The notes under the pieces: model-generated
Seen by the model: the letters and a program-made list of their open reading frames with translations, nothing else
The model's database searches: none
Told to the model about the DNA's origin: nothing
Source of the DNA: Haliotis rufescens
Taxonomy: Eukaryota
NCBI RefSeq assembly: GCF_023055435.1
Contig: NW_025964383.1
Span: forward strand, 17,298,001-17,362,000
DNA: 64,000 nt
Direction: 5' to 3'
Shown here: positions 33,430 to 49,829 of the stretch, piece by piece
Layout of the letters: each line of letters starts with the position of its first letter
Position numbering within the stretch: the stretch's first letter is position 1
Position numbers and translations under genes: made by a program

Positions 33430-35359
33430 TTTCTAGGGCCTTCGGACACAACACTAGAATGCAGTCGGATGAAATACTACAGGAATTCAGTAGCGCCAAA
33501 TTTGGATAATTGGAAAGTAGATGTGTTCGTTCTCACGGATTGAGATGAAGTGAAGGACTCCAGTCCGTGCAAAACATTTATACTGACCCTTAGTATAAAC
33601 ATAGTAGTGGAGATTTATAGATCAAAGAGAGCATTTTCGAAGCCAGTGGCGAGATCAAAGCTACACTGCAACTTCATTAGGCTTTGATCCGAAAGGAATC
33701 TCACTGTCCACTTGAGAAACCAATCAACTTCTTGTCAAAACAAGTTTCCGTATAAAGGGAGAGGTCTGAGAAGAGTTCAACCAATCTAGTCCTGTTATCT
33801 CCAGGGATTATCAATCATTGTTAATTGATTAAATCGGGATTGATCAAACGGCGCAGTACGTTGTGATACTTAAAAATCCGATGTGGCTACTTTCGCATCC
33901 ACAGAAACCAAGTCACAGAAACTTCTATCAGCTTGGAAATCGTGTGATGCTTCTCTGAACGTTTAGTTTCAATTAAAAAACCCGAGAAAACCATGTCCAC
34001 AATCCTAAGAAATCCTTACTCTGGTAGGCAAAGGCAAAGTGAATAAATGTACAGTCAAATCTTGAACTTATTGTACACATCTGTTTGAGGTCGTAAATGC
34101 TATGATAATCTGACCATTTTCCCAACCCGTCTTACATGATCGAAATACAGCACGTATGTTTTGAAGCATTTCAAATACTATTTTTTATGAATACCATCAT
34201 CATGGTATAATTGAAGCAGCTCATTTGGCTTAAGTATCTGGATATTAACCATCTTAGAAGCTTTTGGATGGACGTCGGCTACTTAAAAGGTTACTATATA
34301 AATAAATAAATAGGCATGTACAATAAAGTTTATGTGTGTTAAATGATCTAGAGACATCATCTTCAGTGTATAACTGTCATGTTTTTGGGAGAATTACAAA
34401 GCACGGTGTCATGATTTATATCTTTGAATACAGAATGCTGTTGAAGCACATGATGGAAATTGGAGTATGTTGCTAGATAAACATAAGCACGTTGTTAGCA
34501 TTGTTTTTGAAAGATGCCCACTGTTTCATGTCAGGATATTCTGATCTTTACTTTTTAGTGCCTTTCAGGGGAATAGTATTCATCAAGTGCTGACTTGGAT
34601 CAGAAATGTTATTTGGCCTGTGTTGATGTCAATGTTTCAATTTCCTTTTGTTTTCCATGCTGTCTACATTGACAATTTTTAACATGCATGACTCTCTCCT
34701 TAAGCACTTGGGCATGTACATTTCAAAAGGAAAGAGAAACAATTAAATGCTCTGATAATATGAAATACAACATGACATATATATCTCGCAGATCAATATC
34801 ATATGGGGTTGTGGTTCGTCTGTCTAAATCCTTTTGCTATAGGATCGGCATGGATACGGAAAACGAATTGCAACGTTCCAAACTGTATTTAATGTTATGG
34901 TGCAACCATTACATTGGAATCTCTTCTTCTCCATCATACCTAATGTCCAAATGTGTTTCATTTCAATTGATCTTATATTCAATAGTCTGTATCTTTTTCC
35001 TATTTCAAAGAATAGATTAAGGACGATATCTGCGAATGATTGCCATACTCAGAACCAAGTAAAATGATCGAAGGCTTGGTATTGTGAGATACCATCTCAA
35101 ATTAACCTTTTCTCTCTCTCACAAACTTTCTATACGAATGATGTCTTCAAGATGTCGTGAGCGTGTCAGCAAATGATCAATATTATAATATCGACTTCAT
35201 TATTTATTTCCTCAGCATATTCATCAACAAACAAATGTGGTTTACAATATAATAGGATGCCCTTTGCACACTGTCAGGCAACATTTGTGTACAATAACAA
35301 AAAATGAATAACAAGGTAAATGCAGCACTAGTTGATGTGGATGGGTCTTGTGATTTCCC

Positions 35360-35981
35360 TTAGGCGTTTCTATGAAGTGCACTGTCGTCTACAGACAAAG
35401 CTCGACTGAGAGTCGTCATATCGTAGCTGCTGTCGTTGCTGTATAGGTCTCCCTGGTCTTCGTCGTCCTCACTATATGAGCTGTCGGACAAGAGTTCCGT
35501 GAAGGAAGCTTCATCATCATTGAAAGAGGTATCTGCATTCCAGTCCGCCTCCGAATCACTCTCTGCAGAAGCATCTTTGGTGATGGCGTTTACACAGGCT
35601 TGCACCTCTTGCCACTTGAGTTGTCTGTAGATGGTAAACATCTCCTTGACACCTTCCAGCACCCATCGTCTCTGGATCAGCTGTTCACCTCGGATTATGC
35701 AGTTGTTGGAGGAGTTGGCTGTCATCTTCCCCATCAGATGGTAGACTTGGGTATCTGAAAACAATAAAACGGGTAATTAGAAATCTCGCTAAATGTGTTC
35801 ACAACAATGTCATTTTATTTTGTTCAATTCTAAAATTCAGTGTGATACCAATATTGCCATGTTTGCAGGGGACTGAAAAAGAGCACAGTTCATATTTACC
35901 TAATGTCAGGATCTCTTTCACTGCATTGTCGTGGGCAATAAGGAGACGTCTCAGCTTGATGGCAACTTGAACTGGATCCAT
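35360..35981 (-). CDS. Array gene copy 14 (coding intact; core promoter split by LINE copy A)
   Basis: Same exons as copy 1 (R to G variant); its TATA box is displaced to 39588-39582. Confidence 0.75.
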
Positions 35982-36103: not shown

Positions 36104-36114
36104 GAAGGACTCCA
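36104..36114 (+). repeat. Target-site duplication of LINE copy A, left copy GAAGGACTCCA (right copy GAAGGACTTCA at 39558-39568)
   Basis: 11-bp direct repeat with one mismatch at both junctions; empty units carry a single copy. Confidence 0.85.
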
Positions 36115-39100
36115 CTTACTTACTTACTTTGGAGATTTAACGTGCGCTTTCCGACTGATGCGTATTTCGCACACGGGCCCGGCCAGGCCATTTAATGTGT
36201 TTCCGAAAGGGGCGAAGGTGGTCTGTGCAACCCAAGAGGGAGGTTTTAGGGGTTGCTTATATAGAATTTGGGAATTTTGAGATTTGGAATAGATGCCGAT
36301 GGGATTGGGGAGGAGAACTAAGGGAGCTGGGTATGGTGGATGTTTGTTTGTTTATGTGATTTTGATTTGGTGAGTTATTGTGTTTTTAGATGCGTTTTAT
36401 TAGTTCCGTTTTGATTAAGAATACGCCTAAGGCCTTGAAGTTTTCTAGTTTATTTTGTGGGTTTAGTATTGCTTCTAGAGTTAGAGCCTTGTTTAGATTG
36501 AGGGTGGTTTGTAATGCGGTTCGATGTGTTAGGTAGTGTGTGCAGTGGATGAGTGCGTGTTCTGGGGTTTCTGGTTGTTTGCAGTGTGGGCAGTTACCTG
36601 TAGTGTGTTTTTTAATTTTTTTTAGGTGGTTATTTAGGTTGGTGTGTCCTGTTTGGAGTTTAGTGATTACTCTGTCGATTTTTTTGGATGGATGGAGAAT
36701 TTTTGGTTTGGTTAGTGGTTTGCTGAGCACTTTTTTGATTTGGCTATTTGAGTTTAGATATAGGTTATGCCATTTTTTGGTGATTTTTTGCTTGTTTACA
36801 CTTTTAATTTCTGATTTTGAGATGGGTAAGTTTAAGCTTATTTCTGGGATTTTGAGGGATAGTTTAGCTGCTTTATCGGCGTTTTCATTACCGTATATTC
36901 CTACGTGGGCGGGTATCCACAAGAAGGTTATTTGTTTGCCTGCCTTAGTTAGGTCGTTGGAGCTTTTAAGTATTTGATTTATTAATTTAGGTCGGTTTTT
37001 GGTATTTTTGTTTTGGAGGGCTTGCAGTCCACTTAGGGAGTCGGTAAGTATTAGGATTTTTTTGTGGTTTTTGGATTCTTGATTATGGAGGGCTGAGGCC
37101 ATGCCCATTAGTTCTGCCGTGAATATTGATTGGTTGTTTGGGAGTCGGAAGGATTGTGTGGTTTTAGTTGGTTGCGTGGTATGGACTCCGAAACCTGTGT
37201 GTTTGGAGGTCGGATCTGAGGATCCGTCCGTGTAAATGTGACACCAATTTGGCCAATTTTCGTGTATGTATGCTAGTGTGGTAGTTTTAGCTATGTTTGG
37301 GTCGGTTTGTTTATTTATTTGGCTAGCTAGTGTTGTGTCTATTTTGGGTATTTTAAGTTTAGGGGTGAAGATATTTGATTGTTTGCAGTTTTGTTTAAGA
37401 TTTTTAATTTGGTGTTCATTTAGGTAGTTTGTTATTCTTTGGGATATTGGGGTAAGTAAGGGGTGTTTACGAGCTAGAGCTTGGTTTTTGGGGCTGATGT
37501 TTTGGGTTATTAAGTTTTGGATGAGAGGGTTTGATTGGGACGCGGCCCAGAAATTTAAGCTTAGCTGTTCCCTGCGTAGACTTAGTGGCATTTCTCCTGT
37601 TAAGGCCTGAAGTGAGGTGTAGGAGGTGCCATGTTGGGTGCGTGTAATTAGTTTGAGAGCCTGATATTGTATTGAGTCAAGTTTTTTAGATAGAGAGTTG
37701 TTTAGGGTGTTGTATATGGCGCAGCCGTAGTCTAGTTTTGATCTAATTAGTGATATGTAGAGAGAGAGGAGGGTATCTTTGGATGCTCCCCAGTTAGAAC
37801 CAGTTAGGCATCTTAGGGTGTTTAGGTCTTTACTGCATTTAGTTGTTAGGTTTTGGATGTGAGCATCCCAGGTGAGATGTTCATCGAAAATAAGTCCTAA
37901 GAATTTGGTTTGTTTTTGAAATTTGATTGTTTGATTGTTTAGCTGGAGGATTGGGGAGGCGGGTTTCATGTTTTTATGTTTGAATACTATTCCTGTTGTT
38001 TTTTCTGAGTTAAGGGAGAAGCCCCATTTGTCAGCCCACTGTTGTATTTTATTAAGAGATTTTTGGAGTAAATTTTGGACCATGTTCATGCTTTTAGTGC
38101 GGATCCAGATGGCTCCATCATCCGCGAATTTTGATGTGTTTACTTTAGGGGATAGGCCCTCGAATAGATCGTTTATCATTATATTGAAGAGGGTGGGGCT
38201 GAGGATACTGCCCTGTGGAGTACCATTTTCTAGGGGACATTGGTCCGATAGAGTTTGGTCTATACCCACGGTTATTTTACGATTGTTTAGGAAGTCCTTG
38301 ATGTAGTTTATTATCTGACCTTTGAGTCCTATTTTTTTAAGTTTTTGTATTAGCCCATCGTGCCATACCATGTCGAAAGCTTTAGAGAAGTCTAAGAAGA
38401 TGCCTGTGGTATATTGTTTATTTAGCTGTCCTGTCTTAATATCTTGTTCTAGTCGGGTGAGGTTATCTAGGGTTGAGCGGCCAGGAGTGAAACCGCTTTG
38501 ATCTGGGTTTATGATGTTATTTTGGGTTAAGTAATGTTGTAATCTATTTTTAGCCATTGATTCCATTACTTTACATAAGTTTGAAGTTAGGGATATTGGT
38601 CTATATGAGTTAGCTTGATTAGCTGGTTTATTAGGTTTAGGGATTGGTATGACTAGGGCCTGTTTCCAGGGAGTAGGAACCTGTCCGTTTAGGTAGATGA
38701 GATTGTATAGTTTGAGTAGTGCCTGGAGTAGTTTTAGGGGGAGTTTTTTAATTATTTGGTAAGAAGTTAGGTCTAATCCTGGGGCTGTGCCCTTTTTCCT
38801 GTTTTGGATTACGTAGAGGAGCTCCTCCATTGTGTAGGGTTGATTTATTTCTAGATTGTTATTGTTTGGTTCTTTTGTGGGTTTGTTTTCTGTTTTAAGT
38901 TTATCTTGGATTTTTTTACTGAAGTTGGTGTTACTGCTAACGGCCGAAAAGTGGTTGGCGAGATTATTTGCTTTTTGGGCGGGGTTGGTTGAGTTGTCAA
39001 TGTTAGGGGTTTTTTTATGTCGTTTTAAGCCTCTGATGGCGTGGATTTTGCGCCAGACCGTTCTGGCATCTGTACGGTTATTTATACCTTCGCAGAATTT

Positions 39101-39557
39101 TTTCCAGTCTCTACTTTTGGCTATTTGGACTAGTTTTTGAACCTGGTGGTTTAGTTCGTGGGCTATGTTTAAATATTTGTAATCGCGTTTTGCTTTATTG
39201 AAGGCTGATTTACGTTTTCGTCTAGTCTGTTCTATTTCCTCATTCCACCATGGTACCGTCGGTTTGCCTGTCTTAGATGTTTTGAAGGGGATGGAGGTTT
39301 TGGCTGCGTTTATTATATAGTCTGTTAGGTTTTTACAATAGGTTTCTGGATCATTATTTTCTATTTCGTTTAGGTTAGCTTCGTTGCAGATATCTTGGAA
39401 TTGGTCCCAGTTAGCTTTATTGTAATGGAATTTTGGTTCTTGGTTTTCTGTTTGGATTGGTACGTTTGTATTTCCTATGGTTATGTTTATGGGGAAGTGG
39501 TCACTACCTAGCGGGACGTCGTGCACTTCCCATTGAGTACTTTGGGCTAGATCTGCG
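36115..39557 (-). mobile_element. Non-LTR retrotransposon copy A, I group (I/Nimb/Loa-like), 5'-truncated, about 3.44 kb
   Basis: Array sequence stops at ...GGACTCCA and resumes at GAAGGACTTCAGTCCGCG. Contains ORF2 with RT and RNase H, a ~270-bp 3'UTR and a (TAAG)3 tail. Confidence 0.95.
36386..39526 (-). CDS. ORF2 of LINE copy A, N-terminally truncated: end of APE domain, complete RT, RNase H, C-terminal CCHC
   Basis: Motifs GSDHFPI, PWWN, APGLD, YRPISLTS, QSGF, LDFSKAFD, GTPQGSILSP, FADD, KFLG, YTDGS, FTAEL, TDSLS, WIPAHVGIYGNENAD, CPHC-x7-H-x4-C. The listed start is an internal GTG. Confidence 0.93.
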   Translation of the reverse strand: MHDVPLGSDHFPINITIGNTNVPIQTENQEPKFHYNKANWDQFQDICNEANLNEIENNDPETYCKNLTDYIINAAKTSIPFKTSKTGKPTVPWWNEEIEQTRRKRKSAFNKAKRDYKYLNIAHELNHQVQKLVQIAKSRDWKKFCEGINNRTDARTVWRKIHAIRGLKRHKKTPNIDNSTNPAQKANNLANHFSAVSSNTNFSKKIQDKLKTENKPTKEPNNNNLEINQPYTMEELLYVIQNRKKGTAPGLDLTSYQIIKKLPLKLLQALLKLYNLIYLNGQVPTPWKQALVIPIPKPNKPANQANSYRPISLTSNLCKVMESMAKNRLQHYLTQNNIINPDQSGFTPGRSTLDNLTRLEQDIKTGQLNKQYTTGIFLDFSKAFDMVWHDGLIQKLKKIGLKGQIINYIKDFLNNRKITVGIDQTLSDQCPLENGTPQGSILSPTLFNIMINDLFEGLSPKVNTSKFADDGAIWIRTKSMNMVQNLLQKSLNKIQQWADKWGFSLNSEKTTGIVFKHKNMKPASPILQLNNQTIKFQKQTKFLGLIFDEHLTWDAHIQNLTTKCSKDLNTLRCLTGSNWGASKDTLLSLYISLIRSKLDYGCAIYNTLNNSLSKKLDSIQYQALKLITRTQHGTSYTSLQALTGEMPLSLRREQLSLNFWAASQSNPLIQNLITQNISPKNQALARKHPLLTPISQRITNYLNEHQIKNLKQNCKQSNIFTPKLKIPKIDTTLASQINKQTDPNIAKTTTLAYIHENWPNWCHIYTDGSSDPTSKHTGFGVHTTQPTKTTQSFRLPNNQSIFTAELMGMASALHNQESKNHKKILILTDSLSGLQALQNKNTKNRPKLINQILKSSNDLTKAGKQITFLWIPAHVGIYGNENADKAAKLSLKIPEISLNLPISKSEIKSVNKQKITKKWHNLYLNSNSQIKKVLSKPLTKPKILHPSKKIDRVITKLQTGHTNLNNHLKKIKKHTTGNCPHCKQPETPEHALIHCTHYLTHRTALQTTLNLNKALTLEAILNPQNKLENFKALGVFLIKTELIKRI

Positions 39558-41365
39558 GAAGGACTTCAGTCCGCGCAAAACATTTATACTGACCCTTAGT
39601 ATAAACATAGTAGTGGAGATTTATAGATCAAAGAGAGCATTTTCGAAGCCAGTAGCGAGATCAAAGCTACACTGCAACTTCATTAGGCTTTGATCCGAAA
39701 GGAATCTCACTGTCCACTTGAGAAACCAATCAACTTCTTGTCAAAACAAGTTTCCGTATAAAGGGAGAGGTCTGAGAAGAGTTCAACCAATCTAGTCCTG
39801 TTATCTCCAGGGATTATCAATCATTGTTAATTGATTAAATCGGGATTGATCAAACGGCGCAGTACGTTGTGATACTTAAAAATCCGATGTGGTTACTTTC
39901 GCATCCACAGAAACCAAGTCACAGAAACTTCTATCAGCTTGGAAATCGTGTGATGCTTCTCTGAACGTTTAGTTTCAATTAAAAAACCCGAGAAAACCAT
40001 GTCCACAATCCTAAGAAATCCTTACTCTGGTAGGCAAAGGCAAAGTGAATAAATGTACAGTCAAATCTTGAACTTATTGTACACATCTGTTTGAGGTCGT
40101 AAATGCTATGATAATCTGACCATTTTCCCAACCCGTCTTACATGATCGAAATACAGCACGTATGTTTTGAAGCATTTCAAATACTATTTTTTATGAATAC
40201 CATCATCATGGTATAATTGAAGCAGCTCATTTGGCTGAAGCATCTATATATTAACCATCTTAGAAGCTTTTGGATGGACGTCGGCTACTTAAAAGGTTAC
40301 TATATAAATAAATAAATAGGCATGTACAATAAAGTTTATGTGTGTTAAATGATCTAGAGACATCATCTTCAGTGTATAACTGTCATGTTTTTGGGAGAAT
40401 TACAAAGCACGGTGTCATGATTTATATCTTTGAATACAGAATGCTGTTAAAGCACATAATGGAAATTGGAGTATGTTGCTAGATAAACATAAGCACGTTG
40501 TTAGCATTGTTTTTGAAAGATGCCCACTGTTTCATGTCAGGATATTCTGATCTTTACTTTTTAGTGCCTTTCAGGGGAATAGTATTCATCAAGTGCTGAC
40601 TTGGATCAGAAATGTTATTTGGCCTGTGTTGATGTCAATGTTTCAATTTCCTTTTGTTTTCCATGCTGTCTACATTGACAATTTTTAACATGCATGACTC
40701 TCTCCTTAAGCACTTGGGCATGTACATTTCAAAAGGAAAGAGAAACAATTAAATGCTCTGATAATATGAAATACAACCTGACATATATATCTCGCAGATC
40801 AATATCATATGGGGTTGTGGTTCGTCTGTCTAAATCCTTTTGCTATAGGATCGGCATGGATACGGAAAACGAATTGCAACGTTCCAAACTGTATTTAATG
40901 TTATGGTGCAACCATTACATTGGAATCTCTTCTTCTCCATCATACCTAATGTCCAAATGTGTTTCATTTCAATTGATCTTATATTCAATAGTCTGTATCT
41001 TTTTCCTATTTCAAAGAATAGATTAAGGACGATATCTGCGAATGATTGCCATACTCAGAACCAAGGAAAATGATCGAAGGCTTGGTATTGTGAGATACCA
41101 TCTCAAATTAACCTTTTCTCTCTCTCACAAACTTTCTATACGAATGATGTCTTCAAGATGTCGTGAGCGTGTCAGCAAATGATCAAGATTATAATATCGA
41201 CTTCATTATTTATTTCCTCAGCATATTCATCAACAAACAAATGTGGTTTACAATATAATAGGATGCCCTTTGCACACTGTCAGGCAACATTTGTGTACAA
41301 TAACAAAAAATGAATAACAAGGTAAATGCAGCACTAGTTGATGTGGATGGGACTTGTGATTTCCC

Positions 41366-41987
41366 TTAGGCGTTTCTATGAAGTGCACTGTCGTCTACAG
41401 ACAAAGCTCGACTGAGAGTCGTCATATCGTAGCTGCTGTCGTTGCTGTATAGGTCTCCCTGGTCTTCGTCGTCCTCACTATATGAGCTGTCGGACAAGAG
41501 TTCCGTGAAGGAAGCTTCATCATCATTGAAAGAGGTATCTGCATTCCAGTCCGCCTCCGAATCACTCTCTGCAGAAGCATCTTTGGTGATGGCGTTTACA
41601 CAGGCTTGCACCTCTTGCCACTTGAGTTGTCTGTAGATGGTAAACATCTCCTTGACACCTTCCAGCACCCATCGTCTCTGGATCAGCTGTTCACCTCGGA
41701 TTATGCAGTTGTTGGAGGAGTTGGCTGTCATCTTCCGCATCAGATGGTAGACTTGGGTATCTGAAAACAATAAAACGGGTAATTAGAAATCTCGCTAAAT
41801 GTGTTCACAACAATGTCATTTTATTTTGTTCAATTCTAAAATTCAGTGTGATACCAATATTGCCATGTTTGCAGGGGACTGAAAAAGAGCACAGTTCATA
41901 TTTACCTAATGTCAGGATCTCTTTCACTGCATTGTCGTGGGCAATAAGGAGACGTCTCAGCTTGATGGCAACTTGAACTGGATCCAT
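41366..41987 (-). CDS. Array gene copy 15 (coding intact; core promoter split by LINE copy B)
   Basis: Same exons as copy 1; its TATA box is displaced to 48061-48055. Confidence 0.75.
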
Positions 41988-42395
41988 TTTCTAGGGCCTT
42001 CGGACACAACACTAGAATGCAGTCGGATGAAATACTACAGGAATTCAGTAGCGCCAAATTTGGATAATTGGAAAGTAGATGTGTTCGTTTTCACGGATTG
42101 AGATGAAGTGAAGGACTCCACTTACTTACTTACTTACTTTGGAGATTTAACGTGCGCTTTCCGACTGATGCGTATTTCGCACACGGGCCCGGCCAGGCCA
42201 TTTAATGTGTTTCCGAAAGGGGCGAAGGTGGTCTGTGCAACCCAAGAGGGGGGTTTTAGGGGTTGCTTATATAGAATTTGGGAATTTTGAGATTTGGAAT
42301 AGATGCCGATGGGATTGGGGAGGAGAACTAAGGGAGCTGGGTATGGTGGATGTTTGTTTGTTTATGTGATTTTGATTTGGTGAGTTATTGTGTTT

Positions 42396-45300
42396 TTAGA
42401 TGCGTTTTATTAGTTCCGTTTTGATTAAGAATACGCCTAAGGCCTTGAAGTTTTCTAGTTTATTTTGTGGGTTTAGTATTGCTTCTAGAGTTAGAGCCTT
42501 GTTTAGATTGAGGGTGGTTTGTAATGCGGTTCGATGTGTTAGGTAGTGTGTGCAGTGGATGAGTGCGTGTTCTGGGGTTTCTGGTTGTTTGCAGTGTGGG
42601 CAGTTACCTGTAGTGTGTTTTTTAATTTTTTTTAGGTGGTTATTTAGGTTGGTGTGTCCTGTTTGGAGTTTAGTGATTACTCTGTCGATTTTTTTGGATG
42701 GATGGAGAATTTTTGGTTTGGTTAGTGGTTTGCTGAGCACTTTTTTGATTTGGCTATTTGAGTTTAGATATAGGTTATGCCATTTTTTGGTGATTTTTTG
42801 CTTGTTTACACTTTTAATTTCTGATTTTGAGATGGGTAAGTTTAAGCTTATTTCTGGGATTTTGAGGGATAGTTTAGCTGCTTTATCGGCGTTTTCATTA
42901 CCGTATATTCCTACGTGGGCGGGTATCCACAAGAAGGTTATTTGTTTGCCTGCCTTAGTTAGGTCGTTGGAGCTTTTAAGTATTTGATTTATTAATTTAG
43001 GTCGGTTTTTGGTATTTTTGTTTTGGAGGGCTTGCAGTCCACTTAGGGAGTCGGTAAGTATTAGGATTTTTTTGTGGTTTTTGGATTCTTGATTATGGAG
43101 GGCTGAGGCCATGCCCATTAGTTCTGCCGTGAATATTGATTGGTTGTTTGGGAGTCGGAAGGATTGTGTGGTTTTAGTTGGTTGTGTGGTATGGACTCCG
43201 AAACCTGTGTGTTTGGAGGTCGGATCTGAGGATCCGTCCGTGTAAATGTGACACCAATTTGGCCAATTTTCGTGTATGTATGCTAGTGTGGTAGTTTTAG
43301 CTATGTTTGGGTCGGTTTGTTTATTTATTTGGCTAGCTAGTGTTGTGTCTATTTTGGGTATTTTAAGTTTAGGGGTGAAGATATTTGATTGTTTGCAGTT
43401 TTGTTTAAGATTTTTAATTTGGTGTTCATTTAGGTAGTTTGTTATTCTTTGGGATATTGGGGTAAGTAAGGGGTGTTTACGAGCTAGAGCTTGGTTTTTG
43501 GGGCTGATGTTTTGGTTTATTAAGTTTTGGATGAGAGGGTTTGATTGGGACGCGGCCCAGAAATTTAAGCTTAGCTGTTCCCTGCGTAGACTTAGTGGCA
43601 TTTCTCCTGTTAAGGCCTGAAGTGAGGTGTAGGAGGTGCCATGTTGGGTGCGTGTAATTAGTTTGAGAGCCTGATATTGTATTGAGTCAAGTTTTTTAGA
43701 TAGAGAGTTGTTTAGGGTGTTGTATATGGCGCAGCCGTAGTCTAGTTTTGATCTAATTAGTGATATGTAGAGAGAGAGGAGGGTATCTTTGGATGCTCCC
43801 CAGTTAGAACCAGTTAGGCATCTTAGGGTGTTTAGGTCTTTACTGCATTTAGTTGTTAGGTTTTGGATGTGAGCATCCCAGGTGAGATGTTCATCGAAAA
43901 TAAGTCCTAAGAATTTGGTTTGTTTTTGAAATTTGATTGTTTGATTGTTTAGCTGGAGGATTGGGGAGGCGGGTTTCATGTTTTTATGTTTGAATACTAT
44001 TCCTGTTGTTTTTTCTGAGTTAAGGGAGAAGCCCCATTTGTCAGCCCACTGTTGTATTTTATTAAGAGATTTTTGGAGTAAATTTTGGACCATGTTCATG
44101 CTTTTAGTGCGGATCCAGATGGCTCCATCATCCGCGAATTTTGATGTGTTTACTTTAGGGGATAGGCCCTCGAATAGATCGTTTATCATTATATTGAAGA
44201 GGGTGGGGCTGAGGATACTGCCCTGTGGAGTACCATTTTCTAGGGGACATTGGTCCGATAGAGTTTGGTCTATACCCACGGTTATTTTACGATTGTTTAG
44301 GAAGTCGAGATTATTTGCTTTTTGGGCGGGGTTGGTTGAGTTGTCAATGTTAGGGTTTTTTTTATGTCGTTTTAAGCCTCTGATGGCGTGGATTTTGCGC
44401 CAGACCGTTCTGGCATCTGTACGGTTATTTATACCTTCGCAGAATTTTTTCCAGTCTCTACTTTTGGCTATTTGGACTAGTTTTTGAACCTGGTGGTTTA
44501 GTTCGTGGGCTATGTTTAAATATTTGTAGTCGCGTTTTGCTTTATTGAAGGCTGATTTACGTTTTCGTCTAGTCTGTTCTATTTCCTCATTCCACCATGG
44601 TACCGTCGGTTTGCCTGTCTTAGATGTTTTGAAGGGGATGGAGGTTTTGGCTGCGTTTATTATATAGTCTGTTAGGTTTTTACAATAGGTTTCTGGATCA
44701 TTATTTTCTATTTCGTTTAGGTTAGCTTCGTTGCAGATATCTTGGAATTGGTCCCAGTTAGCTTTATTGTAATGGAATTTTGGTTCTTGGTTTTCTGTTT
44801 GGATTGGTACGTTTGTATTCCCTATGGTTATGTTTATGGGGAAGTGGTCACTACCTAGCGGGACGTCGTGCACTTCCCATTGAGTACTTTGGGCTAGATC
44901 TGCGGTGCATATGGTTAGGTCGATAGCCGACATTTTTTGGTTTATCTTATCGTACCTCGTGGGTTGGTTGCTATTAAGGAGTACTAGGTCGTTTGTTTCT
45001 ATCCATTCGGAGATTAATTTGCCATGATTATCTATTTTATCATCTATGCTCCATGTAGGATGGTGAGCGTTAAAGTCTCCTAGGAATATAGTAGATTTAT
45101 CGCTTATTTGGAGTAGTTTGTTTAGATCCTCAGGTTGGACTTTTTGTTCCGCCCAGTGGTAAATATTTATGATATTTATGTTTCGGTTATTTAATGTGAT
45201 TTTAATGCCGTTGGCTTCTAGGTTTGGCGTGTCTATTTTTATTTCTTCGTAATTTATATCTTCCCTGATAAATATGATTAGTCCTCCTGCGGCTCTTCTT

Positions 45301-45515
45301 GTTTTCGGTTTAGCTCTGTCAGTTCTAACTGAGTTGTAGTTAGGTAGTGTGAATTTGGATTTTTTTGAGAATTTGGTTTCCTGTATACAAGCAATGTGAG
45401 GGCCTTTATTTAGTTTAAATTTAGTTTTTAGTTCATGGCCGTGGGAGGTGAGTCCGTTGGCGTTCCACTGAAAAATATTTAGTCCTTCGAATATTGGGTT
45501 CGGGTGATTGGTGAT
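42396..45515 (-). CDS. ORF2 of LINE copy B: APE endonuclease, deleted RT, RNase H, CCHC; open frame of 1039 codons with no initiating ATG
   Basis: Manual translation extends the 845-aa ORF by 194 stop-free codons to a TAA at 45518-45516. These contain the APE motifs FQWNANGL, IACIQET, AGGL, NIY, LGDFNAHH and PTR, followed by IDL and SDH. Confidence 0.88.
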   Translation of the reverse strand: MTNHPNPIFEGLNIFQWNANGLTSHGHELKTKFKLNKGPHIACIQETKFSKKSKFTLPNYNSVRTDRAKPKTRRAAGGLIIFIREDINYEEIKIDTPNLEANGIKITLNNRNINIINIYHWAEQKVQPEDLNKLLQISDKSTIFLGDFNAHHPTWSIDDKIDNHGKLISEWIETNDLVLLNSNQPTRYDKINQKMSAIDLTICTADLAQSTQWEVHDVPLGSDHFPINITIGNTNVPIQTENQEPKFHYNKANWDQFQDICNEANLNEIENNDPETYCKNLTDYIINAAKTSIPFKTSKTGKPTVPWWNEEIEQTRRKRKSAFNKAKRDYKYLNIAHELNHQVQKLVQIAKSRDWKKFCEGINNRTDARTVWRKIHAIRGLKRHKKNPNIDNSTNPAQKANNLDFLNNRKITVGIDQTLSDQCPLENGTPQGSILSPTLFNIMINDLFEGLSPKVNTSKFADDGAIWIRTKSMNMVQNLLQKSLNKIQQWADKWGFSLNSEKTTGIVFKHKNMKPASPILQLNNQTIKFQKQTKFLGLIFDEHLTWDAHIQNLTTKCSKDLNTLRCLTGSNWGASKDTLLSLYISLIRSKLDYGCAIYNTLNNSLSKKLDSIQYQALKLITRTQHGTSYTSLQALTGEMPLSLRREQLSLNFWAASQSNPLIQNLINQNISPKNQALARKHPLLTPISQRITNYLNEHQIKNLKQNCKQSNIFTPKLKIPKIDTTLASQINKQTDPNIAKTTTLAYIHENWPNWCHIYTDGSSDPTSKHTGFGVHTTQPTKTTQSFRLPNNQSIFTAELMGMASALHNQESKNHKKILILTDSLSGLQALQNKNTKNRPKLINQILKSSNDLTKAGKQITFLWIPAHVGIYGNENADKAAKLSLKIPEISLNLPISKSEIKSVNKQKITKKWHNLYLNSNSQIKKVLSKPLTKPKILHPSKKIDRVITKLQTGHTNLNNHLKKIKKHTTGNCPHCKQPETPEHALIHCTHYLTHRTALQTTLNLNKALTLEAILNPQNKLENFKALGVFLIKTELIKRI

Positions 45516-45534
45516 TTATTTTTTATTTTTTATT

Positions 45535-47175
45535 TTATTCGGTGAGTTCTTTTAGATGGAGGTTAAAGAGGAAGAAGGGAAGATCGGTTAATTTTAGATT
45601 GAAAGCTACTTTGTAGAAGGATTTCATGCTAGCTTTTGGTGAGTTTTGACTATGCATGTATGCTAGGAGTAAGGTGAGGTTGTTTAGGTTTTGGGTGTTG
45701 GCTGGTTGGGGAGTTTGGTTTGTTTTAGTTGGAGTAGTGTCTATTGTTTCCTCAGTAGTGGAGAAATCTTCGTCATCGGTTAGATTAGGTTTAGCTGATT
45801 GAGTTTCCATGGGGGAGGCATGTGATGTGGAGGATTGTGAAGGTGTTTGTGGGATGGGTGTAGCTGATGATTTCATAGTGTTTGTGTTTTGTTGTTGTGC
45901 TTGCTTGTGGGAGAGCGTTGTTACCATATTGGCTGTAGGGTGCTTGGATGAGGGTCGTGTTGTGGTGGTCATTTTGAGGTTTGTTTTGCATGCGGGGGTT
46001 GATGTTTTGGCTATGTGAGATGTGGGAGGGTTCGTGGTTGGTTGAGTGGCTGCTTGTATGTGTGAGGTGGGTGCGGTTTCTCGGTAGGGGCCCCAGACAG
46101 AGCTGTCGGTTATGGGTGTGGTGTTTGTTTGTGGGATGGTGTTTGGGTGTGGTGTAGGGAGGAGTGGTTTAGATGCAGGTGTAGCAAATTTTCGTGTTTG
46201 GATTTTAGCCGTGTCTATGTTTATGTGTTTGTTGGCCTGCTGGGTGAGTGTGTGTCTGTATGGGCATTGGTTTGAGAGTGAAGTGTGTTGGGTGGATTTG
46301 CAGTGGATGCACCAGGGTGTGCATGTGCCTGTGCAGTCTGTTTGTGCGCATTTTTTACATTTAGTTTTACGGTATGTGCATTGGGAGGCAGTGTGGTTGT
46401 ATTTGAGGCACTTTGTACATTGCTTAACCTGCTTTATATAGGGTTTGACTTCTAAGTTGGTGTGGGCTCCGAAGGATATGTGTTTGGGGGCTTCAGGGAA
46501 TTTAGCGGTCTTTTTGAAGTTGATTATGACAATGGAGGTTGGGACCGTTTTTCCGTTTCTAGTTGAGGTTATTCTACGCGTGCTGGTGATTAGGGGTTGA
46601 GGGTTTTGGTCTTGGTTTATGTTAGCTTCTAGAGAGTATAATTGTAAGTCCTCAGTTGTTTCCCTTGGGTTAACCCTAATTACGCCTCGTGTATATTGTT
46701 GCCAATTAGGTGTTTGTTTGATTACTGTGACGTGGAATATTTGAGTTATTTTATTTGCTGCGTTGTAAGATTCTCGGTTAGGGAAGATTATCTGGTATCC
46801 TTTGTTGGCTTTTTTAATATTGTTGTAATTTATTTTTTCTCTTTTAAACCAAAGTCCTATTTTATCTGCCGAAAGTTCTAGTGAGAGAGTGGTGCCTGAG
46901 CCTGCTGAGAAGAAGTAGAGGGCGAAGGTCGTGAGGAAGGCGGCCGGGGTGGGTGTGGGCGATGGAGGTGGAGTGGATGTGTCGAGTTTGCGTTTTTTGG
47001 TGTTTTGAGGTGGCGAGTTAGCTGGTTTGGTGGGGGTGGTGTGTGTCGTGTTTTCGCCATACTCGGTCGGGACGATGTTTTCGAGTGACCTCCCGGAAGT
47101 GTTGTGCGCTTCCGCAGGCGTGGGTGAGTTAGGAGCTGGCATGTCTGCGAGTGTGGCGTTGCGGGTGTCAGTCAT
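45535..47175 (-). CDS. ORF1 (gag-like nucleic-acid chaperone) of LINE copy B, 546 aa
   Basis: Zinc-knuckle cluster CTKCLKYNHTASQC / CKKCAQTDCTGTC / CIHCKSTQHTSLSNQC, directly upstream of ORF2, with Pro/Thr-rich flanks and a KKRK motif. Confidence 0.9.
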   Translation of the reverse strand: MTDTRNATLADMPAPNSPTPAEAHNTSGRSLENIVPTEYGENTTHTTPTKPANSPPQNTKKRKLDTSTPPPSPTPTPAAFLTTFALYFFSAGSGTTLSLELSADKIGLWFKREKINYNNIKKANKGYQIIFPNRESYNAANKITQIFHVTVIKQTPNWQQYTRGVIRVNPRETTEDLQLYSLEANINQDQNPQPLITSTRRITSTRNGKTVPTSIVIINFKKTAKFPEAPKHISFGAHTNLEVKPYIKQVKQCTKCLKYNHTASQCTYRKTKCKKCAQTDCTGTCTPWCIHCKSTQHTSLSNQCPYRHTLTQQANKHINIDTAKIQTRKFATPASKPLLPTPHPNTIPQTNTTPITDSSVWGPYRETAPTSHIQAATQPTTNPPTSHIAKTSTPACKTNLKMTTTTRPSSKHPTANMVTTLSHKQAQQQNTNTMKSSATPIPQTPSQSSTSHASPMETQSAKPNLTDDEDFSTTEETIDTTPTKTNQTPQPANTQNLNNLTLLLAYMHSQNSPKASMKSFYKVAFNLKLTDLPFFLFNLHLKELTE

Positions 47176-47449
47176 GTTGTTTGGAGAGTTGGAGAGCGTC
47201 TGTTGTGGTGAGTGGTGGTGGAGTGGGAGTGGTGTTTTGGGGAGGTGAGTTGGTTTGTTGTTTTTACTTGGTGAGTTGTGTTTAGGAGGCGGAGGAGGTT
47301 GCGGTGGTTATTTGTTGTTGGTTTTAGTAGGAGGGTTTGTGAAATGGATTAATTATTAAAGATTTATTTTGTTGCTGGAAGGCTGGGATAAGGTGAGACA
47401 AGTGGAAAGCGGGGATTAGGAGATATTTAGTCGAAGGAGTGGAGGTATG

Positions 47450-47660
47450 TGAGTGGTGGGCGTGGGTGGTGAGTAGGAAAGAGCGTGCGTTGTGTTAAGG
47501 AGAAGGGGGGATTAGGTGTTTTTTTGTTTTTAGGAGTTGGGTCAAAGGGTGTGTTTGAGTGGTGGGCGTGGGTAGCGAGTAGAAATGAGTGCGAGCTGTG
47601 TTAGGGAGATGGGGGAGGATAAGGTGTTGGTTATTTATAAGAGTTGAGTGTTGTTGTTGG
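47450..47660. repeat. Diverged ~106-bp tandem duplication in the LINE 5'UTR
   Basis: TGAGTGGTGGGCGTGGGT...GAGTAG...TGTGTTA...AGGTGTT occurs at 47450 and 47556. Confidence 0.75.
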
Positions 47661-47691
47661 TTTTAAGGATTTAGGGGTTTAGTGATTAATT

Positions 47692-48022
47692 CGGTGAGAG
47701 TGATGTATGTGAATAAGGATGAAAGGATAACGTGATAATTACCGATGATGGAGTTTCCTTGGCTGGCTATCAGGCAATGCTCTGTGCTGGCTTGGGAAGT
47801 GTTGCTCGCTTGGCCAAGACTCGATTATTTACAGACCGCTGTCCTATAGCTGGAATATTGCTAGGTTCGGCGTTAAACAACAAACAAACAAACGATGAGA
47901 GTGATTTTAAGAGTATGTGAATAAGGCTGAAAGGATAACGTGATAATTACCGATGATGGATTTCTCCTTGGCTGGCTATCAGGCAATGCTCTGTGCTGGC
48001 TTGGGAGGTGTTGCTCGCTTGG
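47692..48022. repeat. ~120-bp direct repeats (47692-47813 and 47893-48022) flanking an 80-bp insert in the LINE 5'UTR
   Basis: TGAGAGTGAT...GAAAGGATAACGTGATAATTACCGATGATGGA...TTGCTCGCTTGG is present twice, with a few substitutions and an 8-bp indel. Confidence 0.9.
47814..47892 (+). mobile_element. 3' fragment of a SINE-like retroposon, antisense to the LINE
   Basis: AGACTCGATTATTTACAGACCG...TATAGCTGGAATATTGCT...CGGCGTTAAA followed by a (CAAA)n tail. From memory it resembles gastropod (abalone-type) SINE 3' ends; not database-verified. Confidence 0.65.
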
Positions 48023-49829
48023 AGTACAAACTGCAACTGCAGTCCGTGCAAAACATTTATACTGACCCTTAGTATAAACATAGTAGTGGAGATTTATAGA
48101 TCAAAGAGAGCATTTTCGAAGCCAGTGGCGAGATCAAAGCTACACTGCAACTTCATTAGGCTTTGATCCGAAAGGAATCTCACTGTCCACTTGAGAAACC
48201 AATCAACTTCTTGTCAAAACAAGTTTCCGTATAAAGGGAGAGGTCTGAGAAGAGTTCAACCAATCTAGTCCTGTTATCTCCAGGGATTATCAATCATTGT
48301 TAATTGATTAAATCGGGATTGATCAAACGGCGCAGTACGTTGTGATACTTAAAAATCCGATGTGGTTACTTTCGCATCCACAGAAACCAAGTCACAGAAA
48401 CTTCTATCAGCTTGGAAATCGTGTGATGCTTCTCTGAACGTTTAGTTTCAATTAAAAAACCCGAGAAAACCATGTCCACAATCCTAAGAAATCCTTACTC
48501 TGGTAGGCAAAGGCAAAGTGAATAAATGTACAGTCAAATCTTGAACTTATTGTACACATCTGTTTGAGGTCGTAAATGCTATGATAATCTGACCATTTTC
48601 CCAACCCGTCTTACATGATCGAAATACAGCACGTATGTTTTGAAGCATTTCAAATACTATTTTTTATGAATACCATCATCATGGTATAATTGAAGCAGCT
48701 CATGTATCTGGATATTAACCATCTTAGAAGCTTTTGGATGGACGTCGGCTACTTAAAAGGTTACTATATAAATAAATAAATAGGCATGTACAATAAAGTT
48801 TATGTGTGTTAAATGATCTAGAGACATCATCTTCAGTGTATAACTGTCATGTTTTTGGGAGAATTACAAAGCACGGTGTCATGATTTATATCTTTGAATA
48901 CAGAATGCTGTTAAAGCACATGATGGAAATTGGAGTATGTTGCTAGATAAACATAAGCACGTTGTTAGCATTGTTTTTGAAAGATGCCCACTGTTTCATG
49001 TCAGGATATTCTGATCTTTACTTTTTAGTGCCTTTCAGGGGAATAGTATTCATCAAGTGCTGACTTGGATCAGAAATGTTATTTGGCCTGTGTTGATGTC
49101 AATGTTTCAATTTCCTTTTGTTTTCCATGCTGTCTACATTGACAATTTTTAACATGCATGACTCTCTCCTTAAGCACTTGGGCATGTACATTTCAAAAGG
49201 AAAGAGAAACAATTAAATGCTCTGATAATATGAAATACAACCTGACATATATATCTCGCAGATCAATATCATATGGGGTTGTGGTTCGTCTGTCTAAATC
49301 CTTTTGCTGTAGGATCGGCATGGATACGGAAAACGAATTGCAACGTTCCAAACTGTATTTAATGTTATGGTGCAACCATTACATTGGAATCTCTTCTTCT
49401 CCATCATACCTAATGTCCAAATGTGTTTCATTTCAATTGATCTTATATTCAATAGTCTGTATCTTTTTCCTATTTCAAAGAATAGATTAAGGACGATATC
49501 TGCGAATGATTGCCATACTCAGAACCAAGGAAAATGATCGAAGGCTTGGTATTGTGAGATACCATCTCAAATTAACCTTTTCTCTCTCTCACAAACTTTC
49601 TATACGAATGATGTCTTCAAGATGTCGTGAGCGTGTCAGCAAATGATCAAGATTATAATATCGACTTCATTATTTATTTCCTCAGCATATTCATCAACAA
49701 ACAAATGTGGTTTACAATATAATAGGATGCCCTTTGCACACTGTCAGGCAACATTTGTGTACAATAACAAAAAATGAATAACAAGGTAAATGCAGCACTA
49801 GTTGATGTGGATGGGACTTGTGATTTCCC

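Follow-up and report, generated by a model that had tools for sequence, protein, structure and literature searches.

Three insertions of a dispersed abalone LINE at one nucleotide of a tandem gene array suggest relative site specificity for a TATA-like element

A tandem gene array of Haliotis rufescens has received three independent hits, all sharing one 3′ junction nucleotide, from a dispersed LINE of the I superfamily. The specificity of this LINE is probably relative and not strict, with the TATA box of the array gene supplying a TATA-like element at a fixed distance from the insertion site. In the mechanism that we favor, the LINE machinery would use an AT-rich, TATA-like heptamer as its guide: the first-strand nick would fall about 20 nt from the heptamer's first T and the second nick 8–12 nt beyond the first, and the bases at the nicks themselves would matter hardly at all. 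Because every unit presents a TATA box with the nick position 20 nt away, a burst in which the family made at least 1500 insertions would have struck the same array nucleotide three times, each in the orientation of the gene. Each of these hits would have come between the TATA box and the presumed start.

The window, by which we mean the whole stretch of 64,000 nucleotides that was analyzed, is a tandem array with a unit of 2551 bp, and its units are 99.1–99.6% identical. The array is absent from the output of Tandem Repeats Finder, since the unit is longer than the maximum period of that program. Each unit codes for a 158-aa orphan protein that is annotated in Haliotis rufescens, and the ATG is found about 133 nt downstream of the point where the LINE inserts. 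Counted in the assembly, the array has about 37 units; the site is empty in 34 of 37 and filled by a LINE in the other three, in which the LINE now lies between the TATA box and the presumed start. Every unit is a perfect instance of the target geometry of the LINE, with the TATA box of the gene followed by 20 nt and the nick. The features of the array and of its LINE copies c0, c1 and c2 are as follows.

33552–33583, plus strand: example of an empty site, with the target at 33552–33562, the nick position after 33562 and the TATA box at 33575–33583
35360–35981, minus strand: array gene copy downstream of c1 (158-aa orphan protein)
35981 (ATG) to 35899 (donor), minus strand: exon 1 of this gene copy
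35360, minus strand: stop codon, end of exon 2
36104–36114, plus strand: target GAAGGACTCCA, 3′ junction of c1 and left TSD copy; first-strand nick after 36114
36115–39557, minus strand: LINE copy c1, 5′-truncated, 3443 bp including the tail
36115–36130: (CTTA)3 tail of c1
36386–39526, minus strand: ORF2 remnant of c1, with RT and RNase H
39558–39568, plus strand: right TSD copy of c1, GAAGGACTTCA, with one private C>T found in no empty unit
39581–39589, minus strand: TATA box of the array gene beside c1, GTATAAATG on the minus strand; first T 20 nt from the nick
42110–42120, plus strand: target GAAGGACTCCA, 3′ junction of c2
42121–48039, minus strand: LINE copy c2, with the complete 5′ end of the family, 5919 bp, (CTTA)4 tail
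42396–45515, minus strand: ORF2 of c2, with RNase H, an intact APE domain, and an RT that has lost 663 bp of coding sequence in a private in-frame deletion
44305–44306, minus strand: junction of the 663-bp deletion; a 34-mer spanning it occurs once in the genome
45535–47175, minus strand: ORF1 of c2, with three CCHC knuckles
48040–48041, plus strand: extra nucleotides CA separating the 5′ end of c2 from the flank, which are a 2-bp TSD or else were added without a template
48054–48062, minus strand: TATA box of the c2-bearing unit, 14 nt from the full-length LINE 5′ end; first T (48061) at 22 nt
C605:17281057–17283176, outside the window: third LINE copy c0, 2.1 kb, identical 3′ junction, 11–12-bp TSD

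Both c1 and c2 lie on the minus strand and interrupt the array after the same base of the target. A sequence-only reading of the window had described these two copies of an I-group LINE, with an identical 3′ junction and the same orientation in a 2551-bp unit, and this description was confirmed and extended by the discovery of c0. Its account of the differences between the copies also holds. The truncated c1 is flanked by an 11-bp TSD (36104–36114 and 39558–39568, one mismatch), and c2 has a complete 5′ end with two extra nucleotides and no real TSD; the tails are (CTTA)3 and (CTTA)4; and each copy has sequence missing from the other, namely 663 bp in c1 (the in-frame deletion of c2) and about 3.1 kb of 5′ sequence in c2. 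The 3′ junction of c2 stands as first read, and its other end had to be corrected, with the element ending at 48039 and the flank starting at 48042. At the genome-average density of 1532 copies in 2 × 1.33 Gb, about 2e-5 insertions would be expected by chance in 37 oriented array sites, versus the three observed.

Because their truncation points, TSDs, family-polymorphic SNPs and unit haplotypes differ, c0, c1 and c2 are shown, at the level of the assembled sequence, to be three independent insertions. This agrees with the separate events that the sequence-only reading had proposed, and they are TPRT events placed with single-nucleotide precision. At two family-polymorphic sites, c0 has the other allele relative to c1 and c2. 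The c2-bearing unit is nearly identical to an adjacent empty unit (1 and 2 differences, and a 9-bp deletion in common), and the units closest to those bearing c1 and c0 are other empty units. The sequence-only reading had itself named the duplication of one insertion along with its unit as an outcome that would count against it. A single ancestral insertion might have spread along the array by unequal crossing-over or gene conversion, with later deletions making the copies differ; the array is undergoing homogenization (units 99% alike), and c1 and c2 are 99.8% identical with the same alleles at the two polymorphic sites. However, this history needs two deletions that each end exactly at the LINE/TSD boundary and that leave behind an 11-bp duplication absent from c2. 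The LINE-bearing units are also not grouped by haplotype, the sister of the c2 unit is empty, and the family alleles of c0 differ, all of which make a single origin very improbable. The 663-bp deletion was considered as the marker of a deletion subfamily and was rejected, its junction being unique in the genome.

The LINE family is young, recently active and present in high copy number across the genome, and it belongs to the I superfamily; its element is about 6.58 kb long with an (AAGT)n tail. Pfam matches are to Exo_endo_phos, Exo_endo_phos_2, RVT_1 and RNase_H. The architecture is that of the I superfamily, with APE, RT and a C-terminal RNase H in ORF2 and three CCHC motifs in a gag-like ORF1. 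Relatives have the same architecture, the best named ones being unannotated mollusc and fish proteins at 33–46% identity. A 3′ repeat tail, variable 5′ truncation and flanking TSDs are all present, as expected of TPRT. The tail with the 3′ end has at least 1532 exact matches in the genome, on both strands and in many contigs. In a sample of 78 independent 3′ flanks, the sequences were mutually unrelated (at most 0.12 bit per position). These numbers bear directly on the suggestion of the sequence-only reading that the LINE is specific for this gene array, a suggestion that it had agreed in advance to give up if most genomic copies had unrelated flanks. That is what was found. Three precise hits in one orientation within one array are what a strictly sequence-specific LINE with this protein-coding array as its natural target would leave, and independent copies do have an identical 3′ junction (three in the array and 57 in a repeat discussed below). 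Yet the great majority of copies should then lie in one target, whereas the array holds only 3 of the 1532 detected, flanks elsewhere are unrelated and no private subfamily signature was found in c0, c1 or c2. We regard strict specificity for the array as having next to no chance of being correct.

Evidence for relative specificity comes from sites anchored on the nick, a small convenience sample of 22 independent sites with both junctions known. TSDs at these sites are 8–12 bp long and fall in a narrow range (11–12 bp in 12 of 22), although ingi, with TSDs fixed at 12 bp, is tighter still. At +14 to +20 from the first-strand nick, A+T content is 88% versus 58% elsewhere (Fisher p = 4.8e-13), and 13 of the 22 sites have at most one mismatch to TATAWAWR, compared with 7.6% in a shuffle control. 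The first T (T1) of a near-consensus TATA lies at −20 in nine sites and at −21 in three (12 of 22). The LINE thus has a motif at a fixed position beside first-strand cleavage, on the 5′ side of the element. Among 39 other full-length copies, a TATA starts at +22 to +33 from the 5′ end in 18, versus 6 of 39 in a control window and 7 of 78 in upstream flanks. Truncated copies with a defined TSD have an A/T-rich, mostly TATA-like element at the motif position in nine of nine cases, six of them within one mismatch of the consensus. Since truncated copies carry the element too, the association is a property of targeting and not of selection for expression. The motif is weak when taken position by position, with only about 3 bits of information, and about 40% of sites have just a degenerate AT-rich element. 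On the TSD side, a target motif was sought in the 78 flanks and no position exceeded 0.12 bit; a weak GA/TGA signal is seen at the TSD far edge. In the array unit, the first-strand nick falls within an imperfect palindrome, GGACT-CC-AGTCC, a placement that could point to a hot spot made by the target alone, such as a recurrent host-made nick or a palindrome structure that any reverse transcriptase might exploit. Against this, the TSDs are of the kind that the family itself makes with its two nicks, and the same TATA-to-nick distance recurs at unrelated sites that have no palindrome, so that a target acting by itself is hardly credible.

The same geometry is found in a dispersed repeat that serves as a second hot spot. 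Of its approximately 1665 copies, 57 contain the LINE, always at one nucleotide and with varying truncations and TSDs, and further repeated sites have been struck more than once by the family. Occupancy is 8% in the array and 3.4% in the hot-spot repeat. Moreover, 6 of 51 full-length 5′ ends adjoin the tail of another copy across a spacer of 5–10 nt, giving head-to-tail dimers with TSD-sized spacers. The array and the hot-spot repeat have in common AGTGAWGGA beside the TSD and TCACTT at the TSD far edge. As a determinant, AAGTGAWGGA (a 9/10 match between the two) is not sufficient; other genomic AGTGAWGGA sites at that spacing are all unfilled. Pairing of the tail with a native (CTTA)n microsatellite in the hot-spot repeat was rejected, as empty copies read straight through. 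Homing by read-through or 3′ transduction should give TSDs that exceed the family stagger, and none such was seen. At one locus, an older related LINE occupies the same place in the hot-spot repeat.

In our preferred reading, it is presumably the LINE's own protein that reads the TATA-like motif, and motif quality alone would explain the 8% occupancy of the array. The motif may fall short of explaining the approximately 1e5 enrichment over the genome average, even with jitter, with open chromatin or some additional determinant perhaps contributing in the array. A different route to the same sites is tethering to a host factor, in which the LINE particle would dock on TBP, TFIID or an open pre-initiation complex at occupied TATA promoters, not reading the DNA itself, and would cut the edges of the melted region; hot sites would then be active germline promoters only. 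The fit of the motif to the TATA-box consensus with T1 20 nt from the nick agrees with docking, as does the array geometry, where, once an 11-bp TSD is added to this distance, the second nick falls as far from the TATA box as a transcription start canonically does. At the TSD far edge there is a modest excess of an initiator-like YYANWYY (12 in 6 offsets versus 13 in 18 offsets, p = 0.011), TCACTT occurs there in both hot spots, and the two occupancies are far above what a short motif predicts. However, neither orientation of the TATA element is significantly favored (6 forward, 3 reverse, 13 ties), the initiator-like heptamer is present at only about 17% of sites and many targets resemble ordinary intergenic or repeat DNA. 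We judge tethering unlikely. Speculative too is a further reading in which the LINE would target TATA core promoters as such, possibly via TBP or the open pre-initiation complex, with the template-strand nick 20 nt downstream of the TATA first T and the other nick close to where transcription starts. Given an 11-bp TSD, a full-length copy would then place its own first nucleotides (initiator-like CAGT) exactly at the host start, a putative capture of a ready-made TATA promoter that would disable that of the host gene. We offer this reading only tentatively.

The closest known case for a LINE with relative specificity is the ‘relative site-specificity’ of ingi/L1Tc elements. In the passage of PMC3820030 that cites Bringaud et al. 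(2004, 2006), ingi/RIME and L1Tc/NARTc of trypanosomes (Ingi clade, I superfamily) are described as dispersed, with a near-constant TSD size and a short conserved motif 5′ of the element, beyond the TSD, that is presumed to be where the endonuclease binds. The layout of motif, first-strand nick, TSD and element matches that of the abalone LINE. In contrast, the abalone motif is TATA-like and 14–20 nt from the nick, whereas the ingi-type motif is adjacent to the nick; TSDs are 8–12 bp instead of a fixed 12; and the host is a mollusc, with the clade of its LINE placed to the I superfamily only. Strictly target-specific APE LINEs have nucleotide-precise 3′ junctions and hit multicopy targets recurrently, and Tx1L resides inside another transposon. 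Target-specific APE families include R1, TRAS/SART, Tx1/Keno/Mutsu and microsatellite-specific families (PMC4640811). The abalone LINE resembles these in its APE-type endonuclease, precise junctions and multicopy recurrence, and it sits within another repeat as Tx1L does, but their copies are nearly all in one target and its share is 0.2% in the array and 3.7% in the best repeat target. SLACS/CZAR/CRE and NeSL elements lie at one nucleotide of tandem, Pol II-transcribed spliced-leader genes near the start site, where host promoters can drive them; they have a restriction-like endonuclease, strict site specificity and non-coding RNA genes as targets. SLACS and CZAR are named as site-specific in PMC3820030. 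The abalone LINE is likewise found at one nucleotide of tandem genes near the presumed start site, but it is APE-type, relatively specific and in a protein-coding array. For EhLINE/EhSINE of Entamoeba, which are non-targeted, hot spots arise from favorable local DNA structure and a weak nicking preference (PMC1635306). That preference is at the nick (GCATT), whereas the informative element of the abalone LINE is 1.5 helical turns away. If tethering were right, the analogy would be to Ty3 and Dictyostelium TRE5-A, although what the abalone LINE shows is a DNA motif. These two integrate at a fixed distance from a TBP-containing promoter complex, with Pol III factors shown experimentally. In the literature that we searched, no TATA-guided LINE is described, which is not proof of absence.

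An apparent new site-specific LINE has thus given way to a more general and testable rule, in which the place of insertion is determined by a TATA-like element lying 1.5 helical turns from the nick. The rule predicts that TATA promoters and multicopy DNA will be hot spots, and it accounts for head-to-tail LINE dimers and for recurrent parallel insertions that could otherwise be mistaken for shared ancestry. The family is a natural case for studying DNA recognition by APE-type LINEs at a distance from the point of cleavage. Promoter capture, if true, would be a new solution to how a LINE gets its promoter.

The array in which the LINE was noticed runs through the whole 64-kb window as head-to-tail 2551-bp units with 99.1-99.6% identity, each holding one two-exon gene on the minus strand. 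Protein searches used the two exons as separate queries rather than a joined spliced protein. Exon 2 is 98-99% identical to 158-aa "uncharacterized" Haliotis rufescens proteins, the H. asinina ortholog is 88% identical, and querying Pfam with the exons one by one returned no family for either. The product (window 35360-35981 and homologous positions) is a 158-aa orphan with an acidic tail and records in Haliotis only, encoded by dozens of near-identical gene copies in one macrosatellite-like array. Two unit haplotypes alternate at 17285152-17297851 of C605, the contig carrying the window (units u07-u11, L031/L065), with u08 matching u10 and u09 matching u11 down to shared indels; therefore, the array has also grown by two-unit (5.1-kb) blocks.

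Two stretches of the window, 36-39.5 kb and 42-48 kb, stand out by strong G/T skew and are two copies (c1 and c2) of one LINE. A pattern search for the 3' junction found a third copy (c0) in the same array, so that 3 array sites are filled and 34 are empty. The features are as follows.

C605:17263799-17369786, array including flanks beyond the window
36115-39557, minus strand, LINE c1, 5'-truncated, (CTTA)3 tail
36104-36114 (GAAGGACTCCA) and 39558-39568 (GAAGGACTTCA), flanks of c1
42121-48039, minus strand, LINE c2, 5' terminus as in other full-length family members, (CTTA)4 tail
C605:17281041, upstream of the window, LINE c0, 2.1 kb
39581-39589, 48054-48062 and 33575-33583 (empty unit), array-gene TATA box GTATAAATG, the candidate targeting element

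The sequence-only reading had reported the same 3' junction in both window copies, and c1 and c2 do begin after the same unit base, as does c0. An imperfect palindrome, GGACT-CC-AGTCC, contains the insertion point (window 33556-33567, and in every unit), with the TATA box on one side and the presumed start site on the other. Differences reported between the window copies also hold: c1 is truncated and has an 11-bp target-site duplication (TSD), only CA separates the 5' end of full-length c2 from the resumed flank (48042), and the tails differ by one CTTA. In addition, 663 bp of c1 are absent from c2, an in-frame loss from the N-terminal half of the reverse transcriptase (RT) whose junction is unique in the genome. 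The truncation point of c0 differs again, and its TSD, 11-12 bp, comes from the same target.

Whether these copies reflect one insertion or three was assessed from the copies and their units. The 11-bp duplication adjoins the truncated end in both c1 and c0 and is missing from c2; derivation of this pattern by two simple deletions was considered, and no such pair yields it. Two family-polymorphic positions show the alternative allele in c0, which has private changes as well; private substitutions number three in c1 and none in c2 over 2.1 kb. In alignments around every site (1.2 kb left and 1.3 kb right), the c2 unit is almost identical to the adjacent empty unit (1 and 2 differences, with a 9-bp deletion in common), the c1 unit resembles other empty units most, and the three filled ones form no group. 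From these differences in TSD presence, truncation point, family alleles, and unit haplotype, we conclude that the array copies, as assembled, are three independent insertions, in agreement with the separate events first proposed.

The APE domain of c2 is intact, and the element also carries RT and RNase H domains and an ORF1 with three CCHC knuckles. This architecture recurs in mollusc and fish relatives (33-46% identity) and fits the I superfamily, as the original I-group assignment held; the placement is at superfamily level, and in gastropods this superfamily includes Nimbus and Ingi (PMC11203168). In the full-length copy, ORF2 is open from 45515, just past the ORF1 stop (45535-45537), with no ATG ahead of the APE domain (window 45515-45535), which suggests reinitiation or non-AUG initiation.

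The proposal that this LINE is specific for the gene array fared differently. A genome search with the 300 bp adjoining the tail gave more than 1388 candidate places at ~100% identity, and a 29-mer of tail and 3' end occurs 1532 times across contigs (803 forward, 729 reverse). The 3' flanks were mutually unrelated in ~20 independent copies and then in 78, the very outcome that the sequence-only reading had named as telling against it. No target motif was found there: across the 78 flanks, none of the 20 positions preceding the tail exceeds 0.12 bit. Family copies are truncated at all lengths, with TSDs of 8-12 bp. The LINE is not site-specific.

From the genome average, ~2e-5 insertions would be expected at the 37 oriented array sites; three are observed. 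Empty sites were rebuilt where both junctions were readable (truncated copies in fetched loci and full-length copies with both ends fetched), giving 22 independent sites anchored on the nick, the first-strand cleavage at the LINE 3' junction. Positions +14 to +20 beyond the nick are 88% A+T versus 58% elsewhere (p=4.8e-13), with T/A alternation and C commonest at +21. At most one mismatch to TATAWAWR, in the element sense, occurs in 13 of the 22 sites (7.6% in shuffles); in 9 sites the distance between the first T and the nick is 20 nt, and in 3 it is 21 nt. A second, separate sample, 39 independent full-length copies aligned solely by their LINE 5' end, has TATA starts clustered at +22 to +33 (18/39; a control window gives 6/39 and upstream flanks 7/78). 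The TATA-like element is equally clear in truncated and full-length copies; therefore, the association is set up during insertion rather than by selection acting afterwards on copies that are expressed. It has no clear polarity. For a motif whose positionwise profile holds only ~3 bits, occupancy is high (8% in the array, 3.4% in the hot-spot repeat described next); chromatin state or some further factor may thus play a part.

The commonest target of the LINE is this hot-spot repeat, a dispersed repeat that has the LINE at one and the same nucleotide in 57 loci (examples are L126:258-345, L128, and L041:1790-1900). Its 15-mer occurs 1665 times in the genome, often in inverted pairs, and the close pairs suggest a DNA transposon with terminal inverted repeats. 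The truncation points of three examined fills are 258 bp, 1.76 kb, and ~5.65 kb, and their TSDs differ; a fourth locus holds an older related LINE. The empty repeat has TATATATAC at the same nick distance, and TATATATAC and an initiator-like TCACTT are spaced as in the array promoter. The older LINE of the fourth locus, a diverged one at L129:300-520 (C24:16929400-16929620), carries the (CTTA)n tail too, has a related 3' end, and sits at the very nucleotide filled in the other loci, so targeting by this rule may be older than the young family.

Array and hot-spot repeat have AAGTGAWGGA in common at the TSD edge, which in sense reads TCACTT. As sole attractant this string was rejected, since alone it does not draw the LINE; initiator-like heptamers at the far TSD edge are modestly enriched (p=0.011). 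In the array, the 20 nt and the 11-bp TSD add up to the canonical distance from TATA box to start; with a TSD of normal size, a full-length copy would therefore put its CAGT end at the old start position. Promoter capture or TBP tethering by the LINE is an idea that this spacing might accommodate.

Further repeated sequences have multiple insertions at or near the same place, and among 51 full-length 5' ends, 6 are separated by 5-10 nt from the tail of another copy. Re-insertion where the guiding motif outlasts the first insertion would give such ends. Head-to-tail arrays of near-full-length LINEs (C2:11419916-11464130; C24:20379422-20392783; C578:2306090-2326680; C579:3684-31007) have periods of ~6.36, 6.53, and 6.82 kb and short inter-copy sequence constant within each, and could come from repeated one-site insertion or unequal crossing-over. 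Fragments are also arrayed: an 862-bp 3' fragment recurs at 874-bp intervals, separated by a 12-nt spacer, at C8:402146-404193 (L018-L020), and at C52:300212-395564 (L047-L063) dozens of 5' ends, 1.9-2.9 kb apart, lie next to one flank.

The closest precedents are ingi/RIME and L1Tc/NARTc, which PMC3820030 (citing Bringaud 2004 and 2006) describes as dispersed, with constant TSD and "relative site-specificity"; there, the endonuclease is taken to bind a short conserved motif next to the site of first-strand cleavage. EhLINE hot spots are attributed to local DNA structure and a weak nicking preference (PMC1635306). The strictly target-specific families that PMC4640811 lists are unlike the abalone LINE because nearly all their copies lie in the target. 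Our full-text searches found no description of a LINE guided by a TATA-like element, which says little, as many journals fall outside such searches. The original observation is confirmed and extended, and its reading as site-specific for this gene is unsupported. The best explanation, as judged from insertion-site sequences, is a generalist LINE that would insert by a fixed-distance, TATA-like targeting rule.
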